A stretch of DNA of 30,007 nt from Prasinococcaceae sp. CCMP 1430 (taxonomy: Eukaryota; Plantae; Prasinodermophyta): assembly GCA_013416795.1 (NCBI GenBank), contig RQSC01000031.1, forward strand, positions 254,091-284,097, given 5' to 3'. Position numbers and translations under genes: made by a program. Below, one piece after another: positions 1 through 26,517 of this stretch (the stretch's first letter is position 1; the number at the start of each line of letters is the position of its first letter). The notes under the pieces are model-generated. The model was not told where the DNA came from and did not search any database. It was given only the letters and a program-made list of their open reading frames with translations.

Positions 1-275
1 CGAGCGGCGCGCGAATTTTCTTCCGTGGTTTGCATCGGCAACACTTAGACCCCATCGCATGCGCGCGCGCGCGCGCGCGCGCGCGCGCGCGGCCCCCATC
101 AAAACGCACGCGCGCGCGCGCGTGGCACGCAATGCATTTTGATTTACAGTCTGCGGGCGCGGCGTGACGGCTGACCTATATCAAATCGAATGGCCGCGAT
201 TCCGCGCGCGCGGGCGCCCGCGGGCGCCCCGTTCGGGGCTTCCGGGCTTCGGGTTTCGAGTTGCGGTTTGGTCAT

Positions 276-305
276 AACCCTAGCCGTCGCAGATTAGAAG
301 TGACG
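276..305 (+). promoter_or_regulatory. Telo-box-like AACCCTAG followed by an AGCCGTC..AGAT..TGACGT stretch upstream of NOP56
   Basis: The motif is seen directly. Telo-boxes are established in promoters of plant translation and ribosome-biogenesis genes. Function here is inferred. Confidence 0.45.
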
Positions 306-501
306 TACCGCACGCGAATTTACGCGCCATTGAGGTAAGACCCTATCCGTATATCAAAACGAACGAGTTTGTTTTTTTAATGAACAGAGTTGGTAGAAAT
401 ATTCGCGTGTGCGTCGCGACCTCGGTCGCGCGCCCGCGCGGTTTTTGGGGTTCGCTCGCCGGCTGCCGCGGCGCAGCCGCCGGCCAGCCGTCGCCAGCGC
501 A

Positions 502-624
502 GCGCGCGCGCGTGCGCGCGTGCGTGCGTGCGCGTGTGTGCGTGAGCGTGTGCGTGTGCGTGTGCGTGTGTGTGTGCGCGCGTGCGTGTGTGTGTGTGCG
601 TGTGTGCGTGTGCGTGTGTGTGTA
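502..624. repeat. Alternating purine-pyrimidine (GC/GT)n tract, Z-DNA-prone (duplicated at 2191-2313)
   Basis: About 120 bp of CG/TG dinucleotides with one break at 544-546. Confidence 0.9.
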
Positions 625-749
625 GGGGTGGGTGTGGGTGCGGGTGCTGCATGCCACGGCGCCCACACCTTGCGCGACGGGCGCGACGGGCGCGCGCGCG
701 CGTGCGCTCGCTCGCTCGCTCGCTCGCCCGCCCCGCCCCGGCGCTCGCG

Positions 750-1281
750 ATGGCGGACCTCTTCGTGCTGTACGAGTCCTCGAGCGGCTACGCGCTGCTC
801 AAGACCAAGCCGCTCGACGGGCTCGGCATGAGCCAGGCGGAGCTCGCGGGCGCCGTCGGCGAGGTGCGACGCGCCGCGCGCGGTGGCAGCGGCGCGCGCG
901 CGCTTGTGTGTGTGCGTGTGTAGGCTGTGCGCGGGCGCGTGCACACGCGGCGCATGTGCGTGAGCGGAGCACGCGTGCGTGTGCGTGCGCGTGCGCGCTT
1001 GTGCGCGCGCGTGCGTGTGTGCTTGTGCGCGCGCGCGCGCGCGTCTTCGCGTGGCGGGTGGTGCCTCTCCTTCGCGCGTGCTCGCTCGCCCGCGCGCGGA
1101 CGCTCGCTGACACCCCCGTCGTCGCCGCCGCCGCCGCCGCCGCGCAGCTCGAGACCTTCTCCAAGGTGGCCACGCTGGCGGCGTTCAAGCCCTTCGTCAG
1201 CGCCGCCGACGCGCTCGAGCAAATCAACGCGCTCTCGGAGGGTGCGAGCGCGCTCGCTCGCTCGCTCGCTCGCTCCCTCTC

Positions 1282-1331
<50 letters not shown>

Positions 1332-4092
1332 GCGCGCGCGGCACGCGTGTGCTCGCGCGCCTGCGCCTGCGACCGCGCGCGCGGCGGGCGCTGACGCCAC
1401 CCTCGTCTGGCCGGCCGCCCCCCGCGCCCCCCGGGGGTGCGACGGCGGCGGCCCTCCCGGCCCCCGTCCGCGCATTCAAATTCGTATACCGTCGCAGCTT
1501 GGGCTTGCGCGCATGAGCGCAGCGCCACGCGAAAGCACACCATCGGAAGTCGTTTTCATTAGGATTGATATATTTTCCACCCCCCCCCTCGCGCGCGCGC
1601 GCGCGCGCACTACTTCGCGGCACTTCCGCGGTTGTGAATGATGGTGTGTCCGGCTTTTCCGTATATGCAGACGGTTCCGGACCGATGCTCGAGCGGCGCG
1701 CGAATTTTCTTCCGTGGTTTGCATCGGCAACACTTAGACCCCATCGCATGCGCCGCGCGCGCGCGCGCGCGCGCGCGCGCCGGGGGTAGTTTTGCGTGCG
1801 CGCGCGCGCGCACCGTGCGTTACGTAAAACTAAATGTCAGACGCCCGGCGGCGTGACGGCCGACCTATATCAAATCGAATGGCCGCGATTCCGCGCGCGC
1901 GGGCGTGGCGCCCGCGGGGCAAGCCCCGAAGGCCCGAAGCCCAAAGCTCAACGCCAAACCAGTATTCCCTAGCCGTCGCAGATTAGAAGTGACGTACCGC
2001 ACGCGAATTTACGCGCCATTGAGGTAAGACCCTATCCGTATATCAAAACGAACGAGTTTGTTTTTTTAATGAACAGAGTTGGTAGAAATATTCGCGTGTG
2101 CGTCGCGACCTCGGTCGCGCGCCCGCGCGGTTTTTGGGGTTCGCTCGCCGGCTGCCGCGGCGCAGCCGCCGGCCAGCCGTCGCCAGCGCAGCGCGCGCGC
2201 GTGCGCGCGTGCGTGCGTGCGCGTGTGTGCGTGAGCGTGTGCGTGTGCGTGTGCGTGTGTGTGTGCGCGCGTGCGTGTGTGTGTGTGCGTGTGTGCGTGT
2301 GCGTGTGTGTGTAGGGGTGGGTGTGGGTGCGGGTGCTGCATGCCACGGCGCCCACACCTTGCGCGACGGGCGCGACGGGCGCGCGCGCGCGTGCGCTCGC
2401 TCGCTCGCTCGTCGTGGCTTTTTGTGCGCTTGGCTGACTCGAAAGGCTNCGGATGGCGACGGCCGACGCAACGCGCTCACTTCAATCTACTGGATGCCCA
2501 CGCGAGCGTCTCCCAGGCTGCCGCTCGGTGTCAACCTCAGCGACCACGTCCACTACTATCACTGCGGCGCGCCGTTTGAGTACACCCTGTACGACCCCGC
2601 GACTGGCGAGATGCACGTCGAGGTCCTCGGCCCCGATGTGCTTGCCGGTCACAGGCTGCAGGTGTGCGTGAAAGGAGGCACGTGGAAGTGCGGCAGGCTG
2701 CTGTGCGGCGACGCTCCGGTGGGCGCCGCAGGTGGCGGCGGCGACCCGCGAGATCACTGCCTGCTCGGCGAGGCCGTCGCGCCGGCCTTGGCGGCGCCCG
2801 CGCCCGCGCCCGCGCCCGCGCCCACCTCAGGCGACATGACGGAGTCCCTTCAGGACTTCTTGGAGATGTCCCTGCCCAAGGTGAAGAAGGCGGGCAACGC
2901 CAAGAAGTGCGGCTTCGCCGTGGGCGTGGCGGACAGCAAGCTGGGCTCGGCGGTGCAGGACGCGACGGGCATCCCGTGCACGACGGGCGAGGACGTGCGC
3001 GAGATCCTGCGCGGCTGCCGCATGCACCTGGCGCGCTTCACCGACGGCCTGAGCGACGCGGACGTGTCGCGCGCGCAGCTGGGCCTGGCGCACTCGTACT
3101 CGCGCGCCAAGGTGAAGTTCAACGTGAACCGCTCGGACAACATGATCATCCAGGCGATCGCGCTGCTGGACACGCTCGACAAGGACGTGAACACGTTCGT
3201 GATGCGCGTGCGCGAGTGGTACGGCTGGCACTTCCCCGAGCTGGTCAAGGTGGTGAACGACAACTACGCGTACGCGCGCACGGCCATGTTCATCAAGGAC
3301 AAGGCCAAGGTGTCGGACGACATGCTCCCCGAGCTCGCGGAGATCGTGGGCAGCGAGGAGATCGCCAAGGAGGTGCTCGAGGCGGCGCGCGCGTCGATGG
3401 GCCAGGACATCTCCCCCATCGACCGCGTGAACATCGAGGCGTTCGCCGAGCGCGTCATCTCGCTCGCCGAGTACCGGCAGAAGCTCGCCGACTACCTCGT
3501 GGACAAGATGCACGCCGTGGCGCCCAACCTGAGCGCGCTCATCGGCGAGACGGTGGGCGCGCGCCTCATCTCGCACGCGGGCAGCCTCACAAACCTCGCC
3601 AAGTACCCCGCGAGCACGGTGCAGATCCTGGGCGCCGAGAAGGCGCTCTTCCGCGCGCTCAAGACCAAGGGCAACACCCCCAAGTACGGCCTCATCTACC
3701 ACTCGAGCTTCATCGGCCGCGCGCAGGCGCGCAACAAGGGGCGCATCTCGCGCTACCTCGCCAACAAGTGCTCCATTGCCACGCGCATCGACTGCTTCAC
3801 CGAGGGCGCCGGCACCTCTGCTTTCGGCGAGCGCCTCAAGGAGCAGGTGGAGGAGCGCCTCGCCTTCTACGACAAGGGCACCGCGCCGCGCAAGAACGTC
3901 GACGTCATGCGCGAGGCCATCGAGGCCGCGGGGGGCACCGTCGCGCCCGGCGAGGAGGGCGGCAAGAAGCGCAAGGCCGCCGCGGGCTCGTCTGACTCCG
4001 ACGGCATGGACGTCGACGAGGCCACGCCCAAGAAGGCCAAGAAGGACAAGAAGGAGAAGAAGGAGAAGAAGGCCAAGAAGGACAAGAAGTAG
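750..4092 (+). CDS. NOP56: Nucleolar protein 56 (box C/D snoRNP core), 3 exons: 750-863, 1148-1241, 2831-4092; 489 aa
   Basis: The spliced frame reads [14 protein letters not shown]...AVGE|LETFSKV...QINALSEG|[17 protein letters not shown] and continues with [64 protein letters not shown] and a KKE/D tail. GT..AG junctions are phase-compatible and the total is 1470 nt. Confidence 0.96.
1286..1329. repeat. (TC)22 microsatellite in NOP56 intron 2
   Basis: Seen directly. Confidence 0.95.
1690..2411. repeat. Copy 2 of the duplication, inside NOP56 intron 2, with two complemented-in-place blocks (1754-1847, 1907-1966)
   Basis: Identical to 1-722 except for 2 point mismatches (1861, 1906) and the two blocks that equal the unreversed complement of 65-158 and 218-277. 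Confidence 0.95.
2452..2784 (+). CDS. Partial DUF985/Cupin_5-type cupin coding fragment, in frame with NOP56 exon 3
   Basis: [51 protein letters not shown] matches the recalled DUF985 pattern TxIY..SDE..hxG.P..LGxD..aG..Q.vV.xGxW..L..xVAPGF. Strong GC3 bias. It lacks the N-terminal HPEGG and C-terminal GF, and starts just after the N at 2449. Confidence 0.72.
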
Positions 4093-4249
4093 GGGGGGAG
4101 GGGGAAAACGCGGCCGCGCGCGCGGGAACACAGGCCCGCGGCGCCCGTCTGCACCACACACACACCACACAACTCCTCCGCGCTGGCTCCGGGGGGCCTG
4201 TACACTAACAACGCCACGCTCTTGACACGCCCGCGACGCGACGCAACGC

Positions 4250-4372
4250 GCGCGTGCGCGCGTGTGCTCGCGCCTGTGTGCGCGTGTGTGTGCGTGCGCG
4301 CGCGCGCGCGCGCGTGCTCGTCTTTGTGTCTGTGTGTGTGTGCGTGTGCGTGCGCACGCGCGTGTGTGTGTG
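4250..4372. repeat. (GT/GC)n-rich low-complexity tract downstream of NOP56
   Basis: Seen directly. Confidence 0.8.
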
Positions 4373-4671
4373 CCTGCCGCGGCGCGGGCGTGGCCCCAAC
4401 AGCCACCGCTCGCTCGCAAGTTTCGGGTTGGCAGCGCCCGCTCGCACGTTGACACCTCTTTTCCCTTCAATGCAACGCCCTTAAGGGTCCAAAAAAAAGG
4501 GTCCATAAATGTCATCAAAATGCACGTGCCCGCGCGTGGCGTTATGAGGGGGGGAAAAACCGCGCGCTGGCGCACAGTGCGCGGGCGCGCGGGCCGGGTC
4601 ACTCGCCGTCTCGGCGGCGCCGAAGACGAAGCNCAGCTGCTGCCGCAGCCGCGGCTGATTTCGCCTTCGGC

Positions 4672-7600
4672 TTGACGGCGGCAGGTGCCGCCCGAACGGC
4701 CGCGTTTAGAGGAGGCGCCCCGTTGCTTGCCCGAGCGCCGCTCGCAGGTGCGCTCTTGGCAAGAGTAGCGGCGGCGGTAGCCGCCGCAGCCGCAGCCGCG
4801 GCGGCGGTCGCCCGCGGAGTCTTTTGCTTTGCCGCTGCAGAGCGCTGCAAGTTGACGGCGGCAGCAGCGGCCGCGGGCGACGCGGACGGCAGGCCCGAGG
4901 ACGCCGACGCCGCGCTGCGCGATGCGGCGGCGCTTGTTCGTGCCATCGGCGCGGCTGCGCGGTCGCCGCACTGCAGGGAGAGGCTCGCGAGGCGGAACGT
5001 GCTGCTGCCGATTGGGGTGCTCACGCGCCGAGGGCTGCGTTCTGTGAAGGGCATGGGGCGTGCGCGCGGCTCGCGCGGTGACTACGGCGCCGACGTGGCG
5101 CTCGTACGCTCGTGTGCGCTCGCCGCCGAGCAGTTTGCGCTCGCCGCCGCGGGCATAGCCGGCGTCGGCGCAGATGGCGGAGCGATTCCCGCGTACGACG
5201 CCGAGCGTTGTGCGGACTGCATCGTCGAGGCGGGCGCGTGCGGGACGTTTGTGGAGGCGCTCCGGGCCGCGCGCGCGGCAGGGGCGCGCGCGGGCGCGCT
5301 GCTGCTGCAGCGAGATGCGCTCCGCGCCGTGGACGCGCTGCTTCGCTGCGCGCGGCTGCGATCGGCGACGGCGACCGCAGGCGCTGAGGCTGTGCTGCTC
5401 GAAGGACTCGGGTGGACCAACGCAGCTGCCGCCGCGCCCGCTGCGCTCGGCAGCGCTGGCGCCGCAGGCGAGATGGGCGACGCGATTGGAGCACTCAGCA
5501 CCGGTGCCACCTCCCTCGCTCCTCCGGCGCCCTCCGACGACCTGTACGCGCTGCTCGATGTGCAGCTCGCTACGGTGGGCGCGCTCTCCGCGCGGCCGGA
5601 CGCGCTCGTGGGTGCCGCAGGCGTCGCCAAATTGGCCGAGGCGCTGCAGTGGGTGGCGTGGTCCTTCGGCGAGAGGCTCGCGTGTGGCAAAAAACGAGCG
5701 GGCGCACAGAGTGAGCAAAACAGTGGCGGTGAGGTGATGGCGGCGCCAGCTTCGTCGCCAGCGTCGCAGAGCGAGTCTCCGCGCACGGCAGGTGGCAGTC
5801 GCACACACGCCGGTACGATGGCGTCATCGCGCTCGCCGCTCGCACGCATGCGCGAGGCCATCAGCGGCTTGATAGGGCAACACGGCGGCAGCAGCGGCGG
5901 CACTAGCGGCGCGAGCGGTCGCGTCGCGAGCGTCGCGGCCGCGCCTCGCGTCGTGAGTGCCGCAATCAAGGCCGTGTCGCTACCCCTGTGGCCATGCATG
6001 GGCCGCCCGGCGGCGTTTCAGGGGCTGTTGGAGGAGGGATCGGTGGCGTTGCAGCGCGAGGTGGTGATGCTGCTGCGAGAGGCGATGCGGGACACGGCCA
6101 CTGGGGGCGCCACACGCGCAGCACTGCGGGCTCTCGGTGCATGGGGCACCCTTCTCGGGCACACCTGCTACGCCTTCGGGGTGCCCGGCGGAGAGACGCA
6201 AACAGAAGTCGCAGACCCGCGCGCGGGCAGCGCAGGAGCGCACGCGGACGGCCCCGGCACACTCACCCTTCCTGATGTGGTGGCGCTGCGGCAGGACGTG
6301 ATGCATCTGCTAGTTCTGGCGTGTACGGATAGCGACGACGTCGAGCACGAGGTCGGCGCGTTGCTGGGTTCGGTGGTTGGGGGCGACAACGCGGTCGAGC
6401 TGCCGCTCGAGCTCCGCGCAGAGCTTTCGGCGACGCTGCGCGAAGTTGTTGACAGTGCTGCCGACAATACTGCGGTGACACTCATCGGGGAAGAGCGCAT
6501 GCTCCCCGCTTTTGCCGAAGCAATCGACAGCACCCGAGCGATGTCCGCCTCGATGTACGGCATGCCATCAAGGACGAGCCAGCGCCGGCAATGGGCCGGC
6601 AGCGGCACTGGCGACGACCCTGCTCGGATTGCAGAGAGCATCGTTGCTGATATCATCGACACAGTAGCTGAGGGAGGCAACCCCTCGCTGCAAGGACAGT
6701 CCGCAGGGAGCGATGCGGTTGCAGATGAGGACGAGGCTCGCACGGACGAGCTGCGTCTCCAATTGCAGCGCTCGGTGATTCTTGCGCTACGTGCGGTGCT
6801 CGCCGCCGCTGGGCGCTGTGGTTGCAATGGATTCGCCGCAGCCGCAGGCTCGCCTCAACTCTCGGCCGCGCTCACGCAGTGCGCAAGCGAGCCCTCGAGC
6901 GCAGCGTTCGTGCTGCCACTTCTTTGCGATCTGCTCACCGCACCCTCGCAGAGCGACGCCGAGCTCCCCGCACGCGAGGCGTTGCTGCGGCAGACGCTAG
7001 AGTTGCTGCCGCGAGCCCAGCACCATGCACGCGACAGTACAGGCGGATGCCGTCATTTGCTGGAGCTGCTCTACTTGGTGAGGTCAGCGCTGCTTGCAAA
7101 TCGGGCTCTATTGCAGCCGCTTGTGTGTGCTGTCGATGGCTATGTACCAGTTGTGTCCGTGCTGAACGAGGAGTACGGATCTTCGAGCATGGAGCGCGAT
7201 CACGCCGATGTTGGCTCGGACGAGATGCCCATTCTGCGTTCGGAGGGCCTGGCCTCAGCGGTGTCAACGGCGGTGTTGTCCACGCTGGTCGCGGCCCTCC
7301 GCGAGTCCGAGGACAGCAAAGCGGCGTTTGCGCGCCTTGTCGGCTACGACACGCTTGAGAGCGCGGTGCTTCGTTGTCACGGCGGTCGGCCCACCAGGAC
7401 GTTGCTGCGGGGCTTGCTCGCGCTCGCCTGCGACGACATTGGTGCCGGCGACTTCAACATCGCTCTGGCAGCTGGGCAGGGTGCGAGTGCGCCTCTTGGC
7501 GCGGCCTCTGGCACGACTGCCGCATCGGGGGGAACGAGCGGCGGCCGCACATCAGCGCCGATGGTCGTCGCCAATGACGCGGCGCTGTGCGTACTGCTAC

Positions 7601-10600
7601 GCGTGGCCCGACGCGCGCCCGACGGTCTGCAAGGCGAGGCACTCGCTGCTGTGAGCGCGCTATTGCAGGACTCCACGACAAATCGACTTGCGGCAGAGCG
7701 AGCGGAGCTCGGCACGCTCCTGCTCGAGTGGCTACCGGAGGCGCGAGAGGACAGCATGGACGCTGGACCATCCATCCGGTCGAGAGTGTCTACGCTCCTG
7801 TGCGCAGCCGCGTCGGGTTCGTTTTCTGCTCGCGACGCTCGACGGGCAGTGGCGATGTTGCGCCCCGCCGACGATCCGCCCCCGCATGCCCTCGTGCTTA
7901 TTGAGTCACTCACGGCCATGGCGGAGCGCTCGAAGGTGCCGTCTGCATATTTTGATATGAACGGCAAGCGCTCTGGCTTGCAGCTGTCTAGTGGCATGCG
8001 CTGGCCGTCAAGCAAGGGCTACGCCTTCGCAACTTGGCTTCGACTGAATGAGCCAGCTGCGGGGGCTGCTGTGATGGATATGTTGCGCACCCCTGGCAAG
8101 ACTACTGCTGCATATATTCCCATGTCGCCGTCAGACGCGGATGTTGGACTGGATGAGCGTGGATTCTTTTCTTTCGCCGCCGGTGAGGGCAGCGGAGTTG
8201 TCGCCACTCTCATCCGTGGCGGGGACATCATGGTGCGCACGAGTGGGCGCAAGGACGACGGTGCCATATTCTCTACTGGCATCGGTCCAGGCAACTGGCA
8301 CCACGTGGTCGTCACACACGCGGCGAGCAGGGGACCGCTCGCATCCCCGGCGGTATGCAAAGTGTACGTTGACGGCACGCTGGTCGCTTCAACTCAGCTC
8401 AGATTTCCGAAAACACCCCCGGGGGATGGCGGGCTGAGCGCTGGTGGGATTGCGTGCGGTGGCGCTGGCGGCGTCGTTTGGAAGCACGCCGAGGCGGCAA
8501 AGGCGCAATCGCGGGCGAGCGCGCCGCAGGGCGATTCCGGCGTGCCACCTCCGTGGATGGGTGCGACGCCTCTGGGCGGACAGCTCGGGAGCGTGTACCT
8601 CTTTCACGATGCGCTCAGCGACCTGCAGGTGAAGGCGTTGCACTTGATGGGCTCCTCTTATCGACATACGTTTTTACCAACGGAGTGCGGCGTGGCTCCC
8701 GTGAGCCTTGAGAGTGTCAAGGCTGCGCTTGAGGGCAAGGACTCCTTGGCAAATCGGCTGGCCGCGTGTTTCGTCGCCACCGCTGCGGACGCGAGCGGTT
8801 CCGCATGCGTGAACACTGCCGTGGACGCGACGTCGTGCGAGGCTGGGTCGGCCCACGGCGCGCGCGTCATGCCAGGGACCCAACTACGTTCCACGCGTGG
8901 CCTGCGAGACGCAATGCATGCAATTGGTGGGGCATCGGTGTTCACTCCCTTGCTCACGTGCACGCCAAAAGCTCTGGCCTCACGCGATAGCAGAGCCATG
9001 GCCACGTCGGTGCACTCGGCGACTGTGCGGTTGATTGCATCCATGCTCGACGGTGCTGCAGGCTCGCGCTCTGCCTTCAACGCTTCTGATGGCACGGGCG
9101 TCATATCGCATCTTTTGTCACGACTCCCGCATGAGCTTCTTACTGCAGACCTGCTCCGTGCAACACAAGCTCTGGAGAGGTGCTGTATGGGTGCGACCCA
9201 GTTGCGTGTCGACGTCGTACGCAGGCTGGTGCTGAATTACGAGCTCTGGTGGCAAGCGCCTGACGAGACGAGGCTGCCACAGCTCGAGCTCTCAACAAGC
9301 ACGACTGCCGACATGTTCGCCGCTGCTGGCGGTTGCGGCGCCCTGATTGACGCAGCGGCCGGTGGCAGCGGGCGGCGCAGCACGAGTGCTCGCGATGCCG
9401 GCGTCATCGCAGCTCAGGACGGTGGAGGCGTGCGAAATTTGGAAGACACCGACGCGCAGTGGCATCGTGATGCCCAGGCTCGCAAGGCTGTCGTGTCGGC
9501 GCTCACGACCGTGCTCGCAGGTGATCTTGCGCCTCCGAAAGGTCTCAATGAAAAAGACGCGGCGCAGGCGAGAATGCCCTCGCGTGAGGACGTCTGCGCA
9601 TGTCTGGCGATTGCCCTCGACTCCGGTGGGGCGAGCAGGCCTGCTCCGCCGTCCGACCTCGCCTCGGGTGCGCTTTGCGCTATCGCGGCGGCCTTACTCA
9701 GGCCGAATCGTGGCCTTCGCGAAGTGGTGCTGGGGTGCGTGGGTGGGTACGGAGGCGCAGCGCTTGCCGGTGCTATGATGCGACCGCGCTCGGTCGCACA
9801 CGAGCCATCACTCCCAGACGAAACGGCGGCCGCCGATGGTCGAGGCGACGTGGGTCCGGTCGCGCTGGCTGGCCTGGCATTTCTTGTTGCAATCGTACAA
9901 GCTGTTTCAGATGAGATCGACATCGCCAGCACGGCTGGCACTTCAGTGCCTTCGTGGGTGCACCAAGCCATCAAGGGCCCCACGCAGAGACTGTCAGCCG
10001 GCGTCAATGTTGGCGCGCGCGAGTTTATATCAGAGGCGACAGCTGTGCTTATGTCGAATGGCCCCTTGCACGCGAGTGCGCTCATGGCGGTCACGTCAGC
10101 GCTGGCGCCGATACAGAAACAGACAGCAGCAGTTGAGGCCGTGCTTTCCCTGGCCTCGAAGTGCACAGACGTTGGCGCACGTGCGGCTGCAATCGACGCA
10201 GTTGCGAGCTGGCAGCTCGGAGAGACTCTGGCGCGCAGCAAGAGCTGGCAGGAGCTGCTACTGCCCACTGTCATCTGCGCGGCTAGTGCTGACAGTGCGG
10301 ATCGCTGCTCGGCTCTCAATCTCTTCGCTGCAGCGCACGCGCAGGCGATCGCGCACGTGCGAGGTGGCTGGCGCGTCGTGGAGCGCAGCGTCAGCTGTAT
10401 CCATGCGGCCGCCGCACGAGGCGAGTGCGATGGTTACTCGCTCTGCCATGAGATGTTGGCGCCGGTCCTGCGCGCTGCTGCGCGCACTCTCACACGTGCG
10501 TTGCACGATGTAGGCTCAGCCGACGAGAGCAGCCGTGCGTCTCTTGATTCTCTGCAAGTGGAGGACGCTTTGCACAACGCCGTCTGTGTTGTTGCTCTTG

Positions 10601-13600
10601 CTGATGAGCTAACGATGGGGGATGTCCAGATTGTGCTGGACTGTCTGACGACGTCTGGCGAGTCGCCTGTGGCCGCAACGACAGTGGGGGCTGGCGCGGT
10701 GTCCTCTGCTGCCGCTGCCGCCGCAGCGACGGCGGTGTCCATTGAGGTGCCTTCGCAGATCAGCGAGGACGGAGGACCCGCGCCAAGGCCATTGTCTCCG
10801 AGCGGTAGCATCGTCGCTGATGACGCTGAGTCGGAGGCAGCTGCTTCTGACAGCGGCTTCGAGATTGTGGACGGCGAGGAGGCCGCAGCCACTGCAGCGG
10901 CAGCGCACGCGCCGCGGCCTGCGGGGCAGTCGCGCCTGGTGTCGCTGCAGAGTCAAGTGGGGTCCGATGAGAGCAGCACGCACCGGTATGGACGCCTGAA
11001 GATACCGGTGGGTGCGAAGAAAGGTACTGCGCCAGAGCACGGCTGGGAGGTCTGCCGTCTTGCATGCGACGTGCTGTCGCTGTGGCACAGGTTGCACGCT
11101 GCTCTCCGCACGCGCTCGGCGTCCCAAAGTGCCTCATCTGGCGGCAGCGCGGCCCACGTCACAGTCCCCATCGATCTACGCACCAAGGCAAAGGACTTTG
11201 TGGGTGGGCTCTTTTCGTCAGCGACTGCTGCGGGCGCCGCAGCTCTCGACGCAGCCTCGCGCGGACGCAATGCCACAGACGCTTCAAAGAGCTCTGGGCT
11301 CCCTCCCGACGACTCGCCGCATGCGGATGCGGTTGTCCTCACGGGCGGCGCGGGTGCGCCTCTGAACGCAACTGGCGAGGGTCTGGCGGGTGCAGTGCTG
11401 CGCATCGTTGTCCTCTGTGCTGTCGCCGGCCCTGTCGAAGGCGCGGCCGCCGCCGCGGTGCAGGCACTTTCCGAGGGCGCCGCCGCTCCTGTGCGCCCGC
11501 CGCGTGGTGCCGACGCCAAGGCCGTCCGCAGGAGAGCAGATAGGGTGCAGCTCACGGTTTCTGTGCTCGAGGAGGCGCAGCGTCGCGTACCAAGTGGGTC
11601 TGCGCGGCACCAGATGCTCGGGCTGGCTGTGGAACTGCTGAAAGATAACACGCGCAATCTCGTTCGTGATGCGATTCTGCTCGAACGCGGTGGGATGAAC
11701 GTCCGGAGCAGTGGTGCGAACGATGCTGGCGGCGACGCCAGCACCGAAGAACTCGACGCTCTTGAGGCTGAGCTCAAGCCGGCGTGGGCGCGGCGTGGGC
11801 TTGCATCAGAAGCGCGCACACTCCTGCAGCTCGCGAAGGTCAGGCGTGACGCTGCAGGCGAGGCGATGTCCGAGTGGGCGAGCGTCGGCCAACGCTCTCA
11901 GCGTGCATACGAGGCAATCGCCGGTGCTCGCTCGGAGGCGATTGCGGCCGTCTTGGCGGGCGATGCCGAGCGGCGTGCCGCCGCCGCTGCTGCGCGTGAC
12001 GAGGCTGTGAGCGACGGGGCGATCCGCTGGCGCGAGCTGCAGCGTGAGTTCTACCAGGAACGGGGCCCTTGGGCTGCGATCGCTGCGGCGTCCAGCCTGG
12101 ATCCAACCGCGTCGCCCTCCCGCAAAGCCAACCACGAAAGCGACGCCGACGAGGGGCGCTCCCACAGCTTTGAATGGAGAATGGACAAGGTGGAGGACTC
12201 CTCGCGCCGACGGCTGCGCCTCAAGCTCACCACTGCCCTCTCGGCGGCCGGCGGCCGTAAAGTGGCGTCGAGTGGATCGAGCAGCCCTTCGCCGGGCAGT
12301 CTGGACGCGCGCAACCCAGGGAGCGCAGCTGGCACGCCTTCGAAGCCCTCGGGTGAGGACCTCGTCTCGACGGGAAAGGAATTCGCCGCAAACTGCTCGC
12401 TTGTGACAGTGAAGCGCGTGATCCACGGACGGCTGCGCGTGGATGCTCGGTCCGGTGACCTGGTGTTCAGGCCCCATGCGGATGCAGCAGATGTGGCTCG
12501 CGCGCCGTGGAACAGGACGAGGCGTTGGGCGCTCCGTCGGCTCGCGGAGGTGCGCATGATGCGCTATCAGCTGCGACCGTGCGCGTTCGAGATCTCCCTC
12601 GACGACAGGCGCACGGCCTTCTTCGCTTTCGACACGCGCATCACCTGCCGCGCCGCAGCCGAACGCGTCGCCAAGGCCAGGCCAGGCGGGAGTATCACTG
12701 TCACGGATAGGCGTCGCGCGCGCGAGGAGGCCGAGCGTGCGTGCGCGCGCTGGCGTTCGCAGCAGATATCGACGTTCGACTACCTGATGGCACTGAACAC
12801 GCTTGCCGGGCGCACCTTCAACGACGCGCAGCAATATCCTGTGTTCCCATGGGTCATTGCCGATTACACCTCCGACGAGCTCGATCTCAAGGCTCCCTCG
12901 ACCTTCCGAGACCTCTCCAAGCCGGTCGGCGCGATCAACCCAGACCGTCGGGACTTCGTGTTGGAGCGCTACAACTCGTTCGAAGACCCCGAGGGCATCG
13001 TGCCCAAGTTCCACTACGGCTCGCACTACTCGAGTGCCGGCGCCGTGCTGTACTACATGATTCGCCTTCAGCCGTTCCACTGGCTGCACCGCGAGCTGCA
13101 GGGGGGCAAGCTCGACCACGCAGATAGGCTCTTCCACTCAGTTGGCGCAACGTGGGACAACGTGCTTACCAACTCGTCTGACGTGAAGGAGGTCATCCCC
13201 GAGTGGTACTACCAGCCAGAGATGTTCCGCAACCTTGGAGGGTACGACCTGGGCACACGCCAGGATGGCGCCGTGCTGGGCGACGTGCTGCTGCCGCCAT
13301 GGGCCCACGGCTCGCCAGAGGAGCTGGTGCGCCTCAACCGCGAGGCGCTCGAGTCCGACTACGTGAGTGCCCGTATTCATGAGTGGGTCGACCTCATCTT
13401 TGGATTCAAGCAGACCGGCAAGGCAGCCGAGGAGGCGTGCAATGTGTTCTACTACCTGACGTACGAGGGGGCGGTGGACGTCGACGCAATCGAGGACGAG
13501 CGCGAGAGGGAGTCGATACTCGCTCAGGTTCGCGAGTTTGGCCAGACTCCCGCGCAGCTTTTCAAGCGAGCTCACGCCGCGCGCAGCACCGAGCGAACGC

Positions 13601-14859
13601 TCAGGCGGCCGCTGCGTGACGCCCCGCAGATGCTGGAGCCTGCCGGCGCCGCCCTTCCCGCGAAAAACTCCCGCGTGGCCTGGGCTCTCTCAACCATCGT
13701 CCTGTCGCCCGATGGGCGCGTGCTGTCCGTCGACACTAACGCGAGGTACGCCATGCACCGGTGGATCACGCCGCAGACGCTCTCATCGGGGGCGTTCTCA
13801 TTCGCGGCGGGCGGGCAGGCAGCGGCGTACTCAGCTGGTGGCGCGCGCTGCGCCCTCGAGCCCGACCCGCAGCCGCCGCGCACTCTGCGTGGTGGCGGCG
13901 TGGCGTGGTCGAGCGCCAACGGTAGCGCGGGCGTCTCCGAAGCGCGCGCTGTGCAGAGCGCACCTGCGATGCACTTCGCCGCGCCGCCCAGCCTGCGCTT
14001 CGTACTGAGCGCGGGCCATTGGGACAACGCCATTTGTGCGGTGTCCGCCGAGAATGGCCGGCTGCTCCAGAGAGTCGTCGCGCACAAGGACGCCGTCACG
14101 AGCCTCGCTATGAGCTCGGATGGGTCGGTCGCTGTGAGCGGCTCTGCTGACACGACCGTCATGCTGTGGGACACGCTGCACGCCGCGCGCGACGCCGACA
14201 AGGACGCGCTGCCGCTCGCCTCAACCCCGCGAGCGGTCCTCCGCGGTCACAAGGACGCCGTCGTGGCGCTCGCCGTGGACGCGGACCTCGACTTGGTGGC
14301 CTCGGGCGGCGCGGACGGCTGCTGCATCCTGCACGCGCTGCATTCGGGGCAGTACCTGCGCGCGTTGCACCCCGACACGGGCTTGAGCGCGGGCCCCGCT
14401 GCGCTGGTGGCCATCGCGGGAGGAGTGGTGCCGTGCGTTGTGGTGTACACCGCCAACGACCTGAGCGTGCGGAGCTACACGATCAACGGCCGCGCGCTCG
14501 CGCGCGGCGACGCGCGCGAGCGCCTGCACGCGCTGGCGGTGGCGCCCGAAGGGGACGTGTGCGTGGTCGGTGGCGACCGCGGCGTGGTGTGCGTGCGCCG
14601 CACGCACGACCTGGTGACCACGCGCACGCTCAAGCCTCCGCAAGCGAGCGCGGGCGTGATCACCGCGCTGCACGTCTCCAGGGAGGAGGCCGTGCTGGCG
14701 GGCACTGCCGGCGGGGCGCTGTGCGCGCTGGCGCTCGGTGTTCGCGCGAGCAAGCAAGCACGCGGCGGCGGAGAGGACGGCACCGCACCCTCGGCCGCAC
14801 ACCGCGCCGTTGCGGCGACCGGACTGCCTGGCCAGGACCTCCTCAGGGACCTCCTCTGA
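4672..14859 (+). CDS. BEACH-domain protein (neurobeachin/LRBA/plant Bch-like): ConA-like lectin, PH, BEACH and WD40 domains; 5' end unresolved
   Basis: 3395-codon uninterrupted ORF. ConA-like YAFATWLR..WHHVVVTH..VYVDG; PH RRWALRRLAEVRMMRYQLRPCAFEI; BEACH ISTFDYLMALNTLAGRTFND..YPVFPWV, HYGSHYS, DVKEVIPEWY, WVDLIFG, EFGQTPAQLF; WD repeats SAGHWDN, SGSADTTVMLWD, LRGHKDAV. The ORF opens on TTG after an N (4633); the first in-frame ATG is at 5053. Confidence 0.95.
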   Translation: MTAAGAARTAAFRGGAPLLARAPLAGALLARVAAAVAAAAAAAAAVARGVFCFAAAERCKLTAAAAAAGDADGRPEDADAALRDAAALVRAIGAAARSPHCRERLARRNVLLPIGVLTRRGLRSVKGMGRARGSRGDYGADVALVRSCALAAEQFALAAAGIAGVGADGGAIPAYDAERCADCIVEAGACGTFVEALRAARAAGARAGALLLQRDALRAVDALLRCARLRSATATAGAEAVLLEGLGWTNAAAAAPAALGSAGAAGEMGDAIGALSTGATSLAPPAPSDDLYALLDVQLATVGALSARPDALVGAAGVAKLAEALQWVAWSFGERLACGKKRAGAQSEQNSGGEVMAAPASSPASQSESPRTAGGSRTHAGTMASSRSPLARMREAISGLIGQHGGSSGGTSGASGRVASVAAAPRVVSAAIKAVSLPLWPCMGRPAAFQGLLEEGSVALQREVVMLLREAMRDTATGGATRAALRALGAWGTLLGHTCYAFGVPGGETQTEVADPRAGSAGAHADGPGTLTLPDVVALRQDVMHLLVLACTDSDDVEHEVGALLGSVVGGDNAVELPLELRAELSATLREVVDSAADNTAVTLIGEERMLPAFAEAIDSTRAMSASMYGMPSRTSQRRQWAGSGTGDDPARIAESIVADIIDTVAEGGNPSLQGQSAGSDAVADEDEARTDELRLQLQRSVILALRAVLAAAGRCGCNGFAAAAGSPQLSAALTQCASEPSSAAFVLPLLCDLLTAPSQSDAELPAREALLRQTLELLPRAQHHARDSTGGCRHLLELLYLVRSALLANRALLQPLVCAVDGYVPVVSVLNEEYGSSSMERDHADVGSDEMPILRSEGLASAVSTAVLSTLVAALRESEDSKAAFARLVGYDTLESAVLRCHGGRPTRTLLRGLLALACDDIGAGDFNIALAAGQGASAPLGAASGTTAASGGTSGGRTSAPMVVANDAALCVLLRVARRAPDGLQGEALAAVSALLQDSTTNRLAAERAELGTLLLEWLPEAREDSMDAGPSIRSRVSTLLCAAASGSFSARDARRAVAMLRPADDPPPHALVLIESLTAMAERSKVPSAYFDMNGKRSGLQLSSGMRWPSSKGYAFATWLRLNEPAAGAAVMDMLRTPGKTTAAYIPMSPSDADVGLDERGFFSFAAGEGSGVVATLIRGGDIMVRTSGRKDDGAIFSTGIGPGNWHHVVVTHAASRGPLASPAVCKVYVDGTLVASTQLRFPKTPPGDGGLSAGGIACGGAGGVVWKHAEAAKAQSRASAPQGDSGVPPPWMGATPLGGQLGSVYLFHDALSDLQVKALHLMGSSYRHTFLPTECGVAPVSLESVKAALEGKDSLANRLAACFVATAADASGSACVNTAVDATSCEAGSAHGARVMPGTQLRSTRGLRDAMHAIGGASVFTPLLTCTPKALASRDSRAMATSVHSATVRLIASMLDGAAGSRSAFNASDGTGVISHLLSRLPHELLTADLLRATQALERCCMGATQLRVDVVRRLVLNYELWWQAPDETRLPQLELSTSTTADMFAAAGGCGALIDAAAGGSGRRSTSARDAGVIAAQDGGGVRNLEDTDAQWHRDAQARKAVVSALTTVLAGDLAPPKGLNEKDAAQARMPSREDVCACLAIALDSGGASRPAPPSDLASGALCAIAAALLRPNRGLREVVLGCVGGYGGAALAGAMMRPRSVAHEPSLPDETAAADGRGDVGPVALAGLAFLVAIVQAVSDEIDIASTAGTSVPSWVHQAIKGPTQRLSAGVNVGAREFISEATAVLMSNGPLHASALMAVTSALAPIQKQTAAVEAVLSLASKCTDVGARAAAIDAVASWQLGETLARSKSWQELLLPTVICAASADSADRCSALNLFAAAHAQAIAHVRGGWRVVERSVSCIHAAAARGECDGYSLCHEMLAPVLRAAARTLTRALHDVGSADESSRASLDSLQVEDALHNAVCVVALADELTMGDVQIVLDCLTTSGESPVAATTVGAGAVSSAAAAAAATAVSIEVPSQISEDGGPAPRPLSPSGSIVADDAESEAAASDSGFEIVDGEEAAATAAAAHAPRPAGQSRLVSLQSQVGSDESSTHRYGRLKIPVGAKKGTAPEHGWEVCRLACDVLSLWHRLHAALRTRSASQSASSGGSAAHVTVPIDLRTKAKDFVGGLFSSATAAGAAALDAASRGRNATDASKSSGLPPDDSPHADAVVLTGGAGAPLNATGEGLAGAVLRIVVLCAVAGPVEGAAAAAVQALSEGAAAPVRPPRGADAKAVRRRADRVQLTVSVLEEAQRRVPSGSARHQMLGLAVELLKDNTRNLVRDAILLERGGMNVRSSGANDAGGDASTEELDALEAELKPAWARRGLASEARTLLQLAKVRRDAAGEAMSEWASVGQRSQRAYEAIAGARSEAIAAVLAGDAERRAAAAAARDEAVSDGAIRWRELQREFYQERGPWAAIAAASSLDPTASPSRKANHESDADEGRSHSFEWRMDKVEDSSRRRLRLKLTTALSAAGGRKVASSGSSSPSPGSLDARNPGSAAGTPSKPSGEDLVSTGKEFAANCSLVTVKRVIHGRLRVDARSGDLVFRPHADAADVARAPWNRTRRWALRRLAEVRMMRYQLRPCAFEISLDDRRTAFFAFDTRITCRAAAERVAKARPGGSITVTDRRRAREEAERACARWRSQQISTFDYLMALNTLAGRTFNDAQQYPVFPWVIADYTSDELDLKAPSTFRDLSKPVGAINPDRRDFVLERYNSFEDPEGIVPKFHYGSHYSSAGAVLYYMIRLQPFHWLHRELQGGKLDHADRLFHSVGATWDNVLTNSSDVKEVIPEWYYQPEMFRNLGGYDLGTRQDGAVLGDVLLPPWAHGSPEELVRLNREALESDYVSARIHEWVDLIFGFKQTGKAAEEACNVFYYLTYEGAVDVDAIEDERERESILAQVREFGQTPAQLFKRAHAARSTERTLRRPLRDAPQMLEPAGAALPAKNSRVAWALSTIVLSPDGRVLSVDTNARYAMHRWITPQTLSSGAFSFAAGGQAAAYSAGGARCALEPDPQPPRTLRGGGVAWSSANGSAGVSEARAVQSAPAMHFAAPPSLRFVLSAGHWDNAICAVSAENGRLLQRVVAHKDAVTSLAMSSDGSVAVSGSADTTVMLWDTLHAARDADKDALPLASTPRAVLRGHKDAVVALAVDADLDLVASGGADGCCILHALHSGQYLRALHPDTGLSAGPAALVAIAGGVVPCVVVYTANDLSVRSYTINGRALARGDARERLHALAVAPEGDVCVVGGDRGVVCVRRTHDLVTTRTLKPPQASAGVITALHVSREEAVLAGTAGGALCALALGVRASKQARGGGEDGTAPSAAHRAVAATGLPGQDLLRDLL

Positions 14860-18707: not shown

Positions 18708-18927
18708 CGGCGGCTCGGCAACAAAACCATCAAAGCGGTGCGCGTCCGCGCGACCGCGAGGAGCCTTCCGATTTTCCGGCCGCCCGGCTTCCGCGCCGCG
18801 CCGCCGTCAACAGCCCTATCAAAACGCATTCGTCCGTATCAAAACGCATCCGCTGCTGCGCGCGCGGAATTACTCAGCGCCCGCCGATGCCGACAAGTCG
18901 CTCAATGCGGTCACCCGCCGCCGCCGC

Positions 18928-18949: not shown

Positions 18950-18996
<47 letters not shown>
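18928..18996 (+). repeat. Hairpin + C46 element, copy 1
   Basis: CACACTGCGCGCGCAGCGCAGCT followed by 46 C and then an N (18997). Confidence 0.75.
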
Positions 18997-18999
18997 NGG

Positions 19000-26095: not shown

Positions 26096-26517
26096 NNNNN
26101 NNNNNNNNNNNNNNNNNNNNNNNNNNNNNNNNNNNNNNNNNNNNNNNNNNNNNNNNNNNNNNNNNNNNNNNNNNNNNNNNNNNNNNNNNNNNNNNNNNNN
26201 NNNNNNNNNNNNNNNNNNNNNNNNNNNNNNNNNNNNNNNNNNNNNNNNNNNNNNNNNNNNNNNNNNNNNNNNNNNNNNNNNNNNNNNNNNNNNNNNNNNN
26301 NNNNNNNNNNNNNNNNNNNNNNNNNNNNNNNNNNNNNNNNNNNNNNNNNNNNNNNNNNNNNNNNNNNNNNNNNNNNNNNNNNNNNNNNNNNNNNNNNNNN
26401 NNNNNNNNNNNNNNNNNNNNNNNNNNNNNNNNNNNNNNNNNNNNNNNNNNNNNNNNNNNNNNNNNNNNNNNNNNNNNNNNNNNNNNNNNNNNNNNNNNNN
26501 NNNNNNNNNNNNNNNNN
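26096..26517. other. Assembly gap, 422 N
   Basis: Seen directly. Single Ns also occur at 2449, 4633 and 18997. Confidence 1.

Follow-up and report, generated by a model that had tools for sequence, protein, structure and literature searches.

Can a stretch of DNA be duplicated in such a way that parts of the new copy are complemented but not reversed? This question is raised by the upstream region of NOP56 in Prasinococcaceae sp. CCMP 1430, a second copy of which lies in intron 2 of the same gene within the window (the whole stretch of DNA that was analysed, 30,007 nt). A reading of the sequence alone had described this second copy as keeping an exact offset of 1689 bp while presenting, at two places, the base-for-base complement of the first copy in the same direction. 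If these patches were real, they would represent a kind of duplication never described before. Our analysis leads us to conclude, with high confidence, that the complemented blocks are errors of assembly software and not DNA in the cell. The features of the duplication are as follows (bases were coded as A0, C1, G2 and T3 and compared by XOR, with XOR 3 denoting the complement):

1-722: copy 1, the NOP56 upstream region and 5' UTR, identical to 1690-2411 save for the blocks and the single-base differences.
65-158: block 1 in its authentic form, with the motifs ATCAAAACGCA (98-108, plus strand) and ATCAAAATGCA (133-143, minus strand).
218-277: block 2 in the form found in real reads (contigs of DNA runs X1, X2 and X11).
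1690-2411: copy 2, at offset 1689, within NOP56 intron 2; probably a false duplicate from gap filling.
1754-1847: patch 1, the unreversed complement of 65-158 (XOR 3 throughout).
1861: single-base difference, C versus T at 172, not seen as a variant in the contigs.
1907-1966: patch 2, the unreversed complement of 218-277 (XOR 3 throughout), with an odd T (XOR 2) before it, at 1906.

Comparison of the two copies revealed that 1690-2411 repeats 1-722 at a constant offset of 1689 with zero indels, and the per-base XOR showed that the copies differ at four places only (65-158, 172, 217 and 218-277). The XOR is 3 at 94 of 94 positions in block 1 and at 60 of 60 positions in block 2, in agreement with the offset and the unreversed complements of the sequence-only reading, while the two remaining places are single-base changes (172, T in copy 1 to C in copy 2; 217, C to T). 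The extent given earlier holds for the complemented blocks and needs correcting for the duplication itself, which begins at window base 1; its left end is cut by the window there, and the unit may therefore exceed 722 nt. In dibase colour coding, the 156 base differences collapse to 7 colour differences, at 64/65, 158/159, 171/172, 172/173, 216/217, 217/218 and 277/278, the same number as in the earlier manual count. Because block 1 opens with 27 nt of (GC)n, a repeat whose complement equals a 1-nt phase shift as well, its informative part is 92-158; with a chance complement match of 0.284 per base, the 127 informative positions of the blocks correspond to a probability of ~4e-70.

The pattern is confined to this one pair of copies in the window. 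A k=16 scan and a blastn search of the complement-only window against the window returned diagonal 1689 and nothing else, and at other offsets the longest same-direction complement run in the window is only 30 nt, within (GC)n. An inverted duplication or template switch would make copy 2 the reverse complement of copy 1, and it is not: neither a reverse-complement nor a reversed match of the blocks was found in the window by the k=16 scan and blastn. Mirror symmetry is likewise absent, each block being 17-23% identical to its own reverse, and inversion of a mirror repeat is thus unable to mimic a plain complement here. The earlier exclusion of known copying mechanisms is upheld by these results, as the blocks are neither reverse complements nor mirror repeats.

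Which of the two forms is present in the cell? Read evidence came from Logan contigs aligned to the window, not from raw reads, and covered three DNA runs (X1, X2 and X11); since 1-131, 496-755, 966-1151 and four more intervals were masked as repeats in this alignment, most of block 1 and the 1689/1690 junction lie beyond the reach of the contigs. The copy-1 form of block 2 is present in the reads: 79-nt contigs match 199-277 (X1 and X2) and one of 72 nt matches 181-252 (X11), with 1-2 other letters, and contigs with C or T at 278 continue from 248. Contigs of the three DNA runs match the remainder of the stretch with 0 mismatches. The copy-2 patches occur in no contig among those listed for the three DNA runs, with 1-131 and other repeats masked. 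Patch 2, if real, predicts a contig or unitig of ~120 nt, and none is among the contigs listed, though the 72-79-nt pieces are. Summed depth was 1.7/10.9/0 in the three DNA runs for the bin 1761-1870 (patch 1) and non-zero (252/232/152) for the bin 1871-1980 (patch 2); most of the depth in the bins comes from partial GC-rich matches, to which we tentatively ascribe the value over 1871-1980. The patches are probably absent from all reads, and their sequence is almost certainly absent from the cell, so that they carry no biological significance.

For block 1, the evidence comes from a recurrent motif. ATCAAAAYGCA (also written ATCAAAAYGMA) occurs at 7 sites in the window versus 0.02 expected; copy-1 block 1 holds two of these, others lie outside the duplication (including 4514, 18818 and 18838), and the unreversed complement of the motif, TAGTTTTRCKT, is found only in copy-2 block 1. 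A k-mer direction test, which is ~80% accurate, also favoured copy 1 for block 1, by 5-9 bits; for block 2 the same test, at the same ~80% accuracy, favoured the copy-2 form by 4-10 bits, contrary to the reads, and no 60-mer in the window scored as more complement-like than copy-1 230-289. Because of its accuracy and the conflict with the reads at block 2, we did not rely on this test. The proposal that copy 1 is the authentic one is therefore backed for block 2 by contigs of three DNA runs and for block 1 by the motif statistics, whereas its telo-box argument is weak, since AACCCTA occurs just twice in the 30-kb window, which is about what chance would give.

The surroundings of copy 2 carry several signs of misassembly. 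The NOP56 context that had been proposed for the duplication was borne out, with exons at 750-864, 1147-1241 and 2831-4092, and the features of the gene and of its intron 2 are these:

750-864, plus strand: NOP56 exon 1 (translation; RNA contig over 756-863; 82% nucleotide identity to a relative).
1147-1241, plus strand: NOP56 exon 2 (translation; RNA contig).
1590-1612: (GC)n tract, probably the left edge of a former gap; the intron 2 DNA contigs end here.
2449: single N, the join of two non-overlapping pieces; its flanks do not overlap and the contig match of the Cupin piece begins at 2450.
2450-2782, plus strand: Cupin_5 (PF06172) gene fragment, foreign to the locus and in frame with exon 3 (Pfam, contigs).
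2783-2830: (GCGCCC)n tract with the 3' end of the intron, where the former gap probably stopped on the right (tandem repeat at 2794-2823).
2831-4092, plus strand: NOP56 exon 3, with the Nop domain (PF01798, E = 1e-87; homologues up to 86% identity).

The mRNA is spliced from 1241 to 2831: an RNA contig splices 1152-1235 to 2833, and its 8 intervening letters fit 1236-1241 plus 2831-2832. In each of the three DNA runs, the contigs that cover 1406 onward break off at 1596, 1609 or 1612, and a 434-nt contig with exon 3 begins near 2798. At the other end of the gene, a DNA contig of ~656 nt covers ~620-1275 and crosses the 722/723 edge, and an RNA contig (X15) runs from 683-722 into exon 1. Microsatellites stand at the edges within the intron: a (GC)n tract occupies 1590-1612, copy 2 ends at 2411 in (GCTC)n, and (GCGCCC)n covers 2794-2823. 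The Cupin_5 piece (Pfam E = 2e-17) spans only profile positions 37-127 of 139, and it sits at single-copy depth in 14-kb contigs of X1, X2 and X11, the remaining 2.8 kb and 11.2 kb of which do not match the window around it. Low-complexity or N junctions combined with sequence of another locus are thus both found here, as in a wrong gap fill, and this setting of copy 2 amid misassembly signs bears out the earlier view that the cause most likely lies in software or encoding. In a relative (86% amino acid identity), intron 2 is ~555 nt long and has no Cupin piece; in the window it measures 1589 nt, of which 496 nt are left once copy 2 and 2412-2782 are subtracted. Only the exons align at the relative's locus, the non-coding DNA being too diverged to reveal the ancestral form of the blocks.

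Elsewhere in the window there is a sized gap at 26096-26517, a 46-nt poly-C run at 18951-18997 abuts an N, and no overlap was found between the flanks of the single Ns in the window. External searches were made with both DNA and protein: the anchor 173-203, common to both copies, gave zero matches in a metagenome scan, NOP56 exon 3 matched metagenome contigs at 69% identity at best with none conspecific, and protein searches returned no 100% self match, the closest NOP56 being at 86% and the closest NMD3 at 96% (ENA).

At the actual locus, the upstream region most likely occurs once, as 1-722 in its copy-1 form, and NOP56 intron 2 is most likely ~0.5 kb long. We envisage that a draft assembly had a gap in intron 2, between the (GC)n near 1610 and the (GCGCCC)n near 2800, and that a gap-closing or contig-chaining step would have walked through the microsatellites into the wrong sequence. 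On the left side, the NOP56 upstream region may have been copied again (1690-2411, perhaps from ~1613 onward), and on the right side a Cupin_5 fragment of another locus may have been drawn in (2450-2782); the two extensions would then have failed to meet, leaving the single N at 2449. The false copy would have been stitched from short pieces, of which 1754-1847 and 1907-1966 were complemented with their order unchanged, by one of two conceivable routes: either an opposite-strand piece was reversed without complementing and the whole was flipped later, or decoding of a colour-space piece started from its true first base in complemented form.

Within the artefact reading, we give somewhat better than even chances to the first route, a base-space strand-flag error during the chaining of contigs or unitigs or during gap filling, in which opposite-strand pieces were only reversed (or only complemented) and the whole was oriented afterwards. 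The alternation of identity and complement with no indel resembles a path of alternately oriented pieces, and the complement class alone occurs, as such an error would predict. One patch edge, 277/278, falls on a true fork in the read graph (the contig stops at 277, and different contigs carry C or T at 278); the three other patch edges do not match contig ends in the aligned runs. The single N, the sized gap at 26096-26517 and the microsatellite junctions fit a short-read scaffold with gap closing. Pieces of a de Bruijn path overlap by k-1, however, and a flipped piece should disturb these overlaps, yet no disturbance was seen; we also know of no named assembler with such a strand-flag bug.

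The second route, decoding of SOLiD dibase data from the complement of the true anchor base, is possible but appears less probable. An anchor taken uncomplemented from an opposite-strand read, for example, would yield the plain complement until the next piece starts. Such decoding accounts economically for the differences, 7 colour changes explaining all 156; the three clean junctions need one delta-3 colour change each, and the lone change at 172 behaves as a valid two-colour SNP. With its length of exactly 60 nt and a T just before it that fits neither identity nor complement, patch 2 resembles what we take to be a 60-colour read with its primer base (csfasta format), but patch 1 is 94 nt long and lacks a preceding T. 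Moreover, the assembly is without evidence of SOLiD input, and the 46-nt poly-C run abutting an N looks more like Illumina, presumably a two-channel poly-G tail. Random colour errors should also yield long patches of the A<>C/G<>T and A<>G/C<>T classes (XOR 1 and XOR 2), of which the window has none, although it offers one duplication only to reveal them.

It is also conceivable, but in our view unlikely, that the tandem duplication is real and that only the two patches, perhaps with the two single-base differences, are artefactual. The contig of 199-277 has ~3 times single-copy depth, and in X1 position 278 is C at ~162x and T at ~86x, which indicates more than one genomic copy for at least some of the element. 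The contig common to 340-495 and 2029-2184, by contrast, reaches depths of 102/83.5/52.5 where the 14-kb single-copy contig reaches 94/96/68 (three DNA runs), that is 0.8-1.1 times single-copy depth in all three runs and not twice, although GC-rich neighbour contigs in X1 are at 38-68x, so that with a local GC-biased depth of ~40-70x its 102x could be read as two copies. Further arguments against a real duplication are that microsatellites, an N and a gene fragment of foreign origin delimit copy 2, and that the relative's intron 2 is ~555 nt long. That the patches themselves are real DNA, written as a parallel-complementary copy by an undescribed biological process, is extremely improbable: they are present in a public assembly, the summed depth over 1871-1980 is non-zero and the k-mer direction test does not disfavour copy-2 block 2, but the reads hold the copy-1 form and no listed contig the copy-2 form, the patches destroy a recurrent motif and lie in a misassembled stretch, and we know of no polymerase or repair pathway that writes a strand in parallel complement.

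With the complemented blocks very probably being software errors, the practical consequences concern the assembly, which warrants a quality warning: gene models, comparisons of paralogues and repeat or 'mirror' findings drawn from it call for a check against raw reads prior to interpretation. The NOP56 locus is misjoined: its intron 2 contains a promoter-region copy that is probably false, together with a foreign Cupin_5 fragment, and as this fragment is in frame with exon 3 it invites a false fusion gene model.

Compared with known systems, copy 2 shares with false duplications and wrong gap fills the copying of nearby sequence into a probable former gap, the microsatellite edges, the single N, the inclusion of a fragment of another locus and, probably, the one-copy read depth. 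It departs from them in that two internal pieces are complemented but not reversed, false duplications ordinarily being plain or reverse-complement copies. With SOLiD dibase errors it shares that a sequence and its complement give one colour string and that each junction takes one changed colour, but colour errors normally produce three substitution classes and persist until the read or contig ends, whereas here the complement class occurs alone. Finally, inverted duplications arising by template switching, fold-back or long-read hairpins resemble this case in giving a local adjacent copy and in their confusion of strands, yet they are reverse complements, whereas in the NOP56 copy the order of the bases is kept.

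The first 722 nt of the window, upstream of NOP56 (copy 1), recur at 1690-2411 (copy 2, inside NOP56 intron 2) at a fixed offset of 1689 and with 0 indels. Per-base comparison of the copies, with bases coded A0, C1, G2 and T3 so that an XOR of 0 denotes identity and 3 the base complement, gave 0 except at four places, confirming to the base the indel-free 1689-bp offset and the two unreversed-complement blocks that had been claimed from the sequence:

65-158, block 1, 94 positions with XOR 3 throughout (complement), copy-2 form at 1754-1847
172, single-base difference, T in copy 1 to C in copy 2
217, single-base difference, C in copy 1 to T in copy 2
218-277, block 2, 60 positions with XOR 3 throughout (complement), copy-2 form at 1907-1966

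Block 1 opens with 27 nt of (GC)n, the complement of which is indistinguishable from a one-base phase shift, so that 92-158 is the informative part of this block; for the 127 informative complement matches P is ~4e-70 (0.284 per base at unrelated positions). At other offsets in the window, same-direction complement runs reach at most 30 nt and all lie in (GC)n. When the complement-only window was compared with the window by a k=16 scan and by blastn, the offset-1689 diagonal was the sole match, with 0 matches within the window for the other two base substitutions. Since copy 1 reaches back to window base 1, the duplication is clipped by the window on the left and its repeat unit may exceed 722 nt. 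The 77 nt adjoining copy 2 on its 5' side (1613-1689) have no match in the window, with contig depth zero from 1651 on, and for the same reason may be more of the duplicated upstream region beyond the window.

The locus into which copy 2 falls is organised as follows:

750-864, NOP56 exon 1
1147-1241, NOP56 exon 2
1242-2830, NOP56 intron 2 (GT..AG, 1589 nt), holding copy 2
2412-2448, 37-nt spacer 3' of copy 2
2449, single N between the spacer and the Cupin_5 fragment
2450-2782, 333-nt Cupin_5 fragment (PF06172, profile positions 37-127 of 139), in frame with exon 3
2831-4092, NOP56 exon 3 (Nop domain PF01798, E 1e-87)

A (GCGCCC)n tract follows the Cupin_5 fragment. NOP56 is real and expressed: a contig from the RNA run X15 links 683-722/756-863, 1152-1235 and 2833-3231, coordinates that fit splices at 864, 1147, 1241 and 2831. 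The remainder of the window holds usual nuclear genes, including DnaJ, NMD3 and a 3395-aa BEACH-domain protein, the latter a BEACH/neurobeachin-like, intronless ORF at 4672-14859 with PH_BEACH, BEACH and WD40 domains and with a single N shortly upstream, at 4633.

When 31-mers were sampled from window 1-6000, a fraction of 0.85-0.86 of them was present in fourteen marine DNA runs of one organism. We placed Logan contigs of three DNA runs (X1, X2 and X11) and of X15 on window 1-3300, with 1-131, 496-755, 966-1151 and four further intervals masked and only the longest pieces listed. Long pieces matched with zero mismatches at 756-965, 1152-1235, 1406-1609, 2450-2782 and 2833-3231, and the runs therefore represent the assembled strain or a nearly identical one. 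The copy-1 form of block 2 was found in contigs at 199-277 (79 nt, X1 and X2) and 181-252 (72 nt, X11), and 1754-1847 and 1907-1966 were covered by no piece among the longest, unmasked contigs listed for X1, X2, X11 and X15; a real block 2 patch at 1907-1966 would be predicted to give a unique unitig of ~120 nt, longer than the 72-79-nt pieces listed. Contigs that run on from 248 carry at position 278 either C (~162x in X1, roughly two thirds of the coverage) or T (~86x), the 79-nt piece at 199-277 lies at ~3 times single-copy depth, and the Logan contigs are highly fragmented, exons included (434 and 862 nt). Together these suggest a short GC-rich repeat family, perhaps accompanied by heterozygosity or a mixed culture.

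The contigs also bear on the surroundings of copy 2. Those of intron 2 end at 1596-1612, within a (GC)n tract, and that of exon 3 begins near 2798. The Cupin piece lies within 14-kb contigs at single-copy depth in X1, X2 and X11, with flanks of 2.8 kb and 11.2 kb, neither of which matches the window around it; the real genome thus has this piece at another locus, and Cupin_5 in NOP56 intron 2 is a chimeric join, which could yield a false Cupin-NOP56 fusion gene model. The contig common to both copies (340-495 = 2029-2184) has a depth of 102/83.5/52.5 in X1/X2/X11, that of the 14-kb contig being 94/96/68, which points to one genomic copy, with some doubt from GC-rich neighbours at 38-68x.

Which copy is authentic is indicated by an 11-mer, ATCAAAAYGMA, with 7 sites in the window against 0.02 expected:

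98 (+) and 133 (-), in copy-1 block 1
353, in the duplicated part, duplicated at 2042
4514, 18818 and 18838, outside the duplication, intergenic and promoter-like

The unreversed complement of this motif has 2 sites in the window, both in copy-2 block 1, and this confinement identifies copy-1 block 1 as the natural form. The ATCAAAAYG(C/A)A sites are all intergenic and promoter-like, with a tandem pair at 18818 and 18838, and judging from sequence the motif is a possible promoter or transcription-factor element in this alga. The authenticity of copy 1 proposed in the sequence-only reading is thus supported by the motif in block 1 and the block 2 form in DNA-run contigs, and its telo-box argument proved weak, AACCCTA having just 2 sites in the window. 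A k-mer direction likelihood favoured the copy-1 form for block 1 (+5 to +9 bits) and the copy-2 form for block 2 (-4 to -10 bits), in a test that is correct in ~80% of control segments and was trained mostly on coding sequence. In a strand-symmetric k-mer model the 60-mer at 230-289, in copy-1 block 2, is the most complement-like of the window (-9.1 bits versus a mean of +2.1). This rank contradicts the reads, which support copy-1 block 2; we followed the reads over the k-mer test, and the discrepancy is unexplained.

The feature is not real biology, and we consider the patches very probably to be software errors within a wrongly filled gap, in line with the earlier view that an artefact is the most likely cause, which is supported by the misjoined surroundings in the contigs and the kept base order. 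The original gap in intron 2 would have run from the (GC)n tract near 1610 to the (GCGCCC)n tract near 2800. An extension anchored on the left would have crossed the (GC)n tract by slippage, entered the region upstream of NOP56 and duplicated it, and one from the right would have strayed into a Cupin_5 gene from elsewhere; the two would have failed to join, leaving one N, and two pieces of the false copy would have been written complemented but not reversed.

Within this artefact reading, a strand-flag error in base space during the chaining of short pieces is somewhat favoured: it fits the alternation of identity and complement along copy 2, the exclusiveness of the complement class and the position of the 277/278 edge, at which the read graph itself branches, although we know of no named tool with a bug of this kind. 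A colour-space decoding error, which presumes SOLiD data, is a more doubtful candidate. Its arithmetic fits perfectly, the 156 base differences reducing in dibase colours to seven colour differences (64/65, 158/159, 171/172, 172/173, 216/217, 217/218 and 277/278), the number obtained earlier by hand, and an opposite-strand anchor base left uncomplemented would explain the complement-only class; however, the window also has a 46-nt poly-C run next to an N, which hints at Illumina data of the two-channel type. That run, at 18951-18997, lies just ahead of coding-looking sequence and resembles a contig end that poly-G/C read artefacts lengthened before it was joined. The kept base order (k=16 scan, blastn) excludes inversion, template switching and hairpin copying, and the low identity of the blocks to their own reverse (17-23%) excludes mirror-repeat inversion, bearing out the claim that known copying mechanisms are not the cause. 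The biological interest of the blocks is low, and their value lies in the caution they impose on this assembly.

NOP56 and NMD3 are roughly equidistant from chlorophytes and streptophytes (named matches <=75% and <=63%, respectively), and in protein searches their near-identical or close relatives came from metagenome assemblies only. On these grounds the source looks like a marine green alga of a deep branch. Two candidates do not fit: Micromonas pusilla CCMP1545 (Sanger sequenced, PMC4815162) is unlikely given the protein identities, and the published PacBio assembly of Prasinoderma coloniale (PMC7455551) disagrees with the gaps and Ns seen here. Among the NOP56 proteins of the collection, the best match (86% identical) lies on TARA/ENA metagenome contigs with 69% GC, and its locus, L081, was aligned with the window:

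L081 4228-4468 and 4993-6269, aligned with window 745-1269 and 2828-4092

Exons alone align, with 83% nucleotide identity in exon 3. Exons 1 and 2 are fused in the relative, which has no intron 1, so that this intron differs between close lineages. In the locus alignment neither the upstream element nor the Cupin piece is present in the relative's intron 2, which measures ~555 nt, and taking both copy 2 (722 nt) and the 371 nt at 2412-2782 out of the window's intron 2 brings it down to 496 nt.
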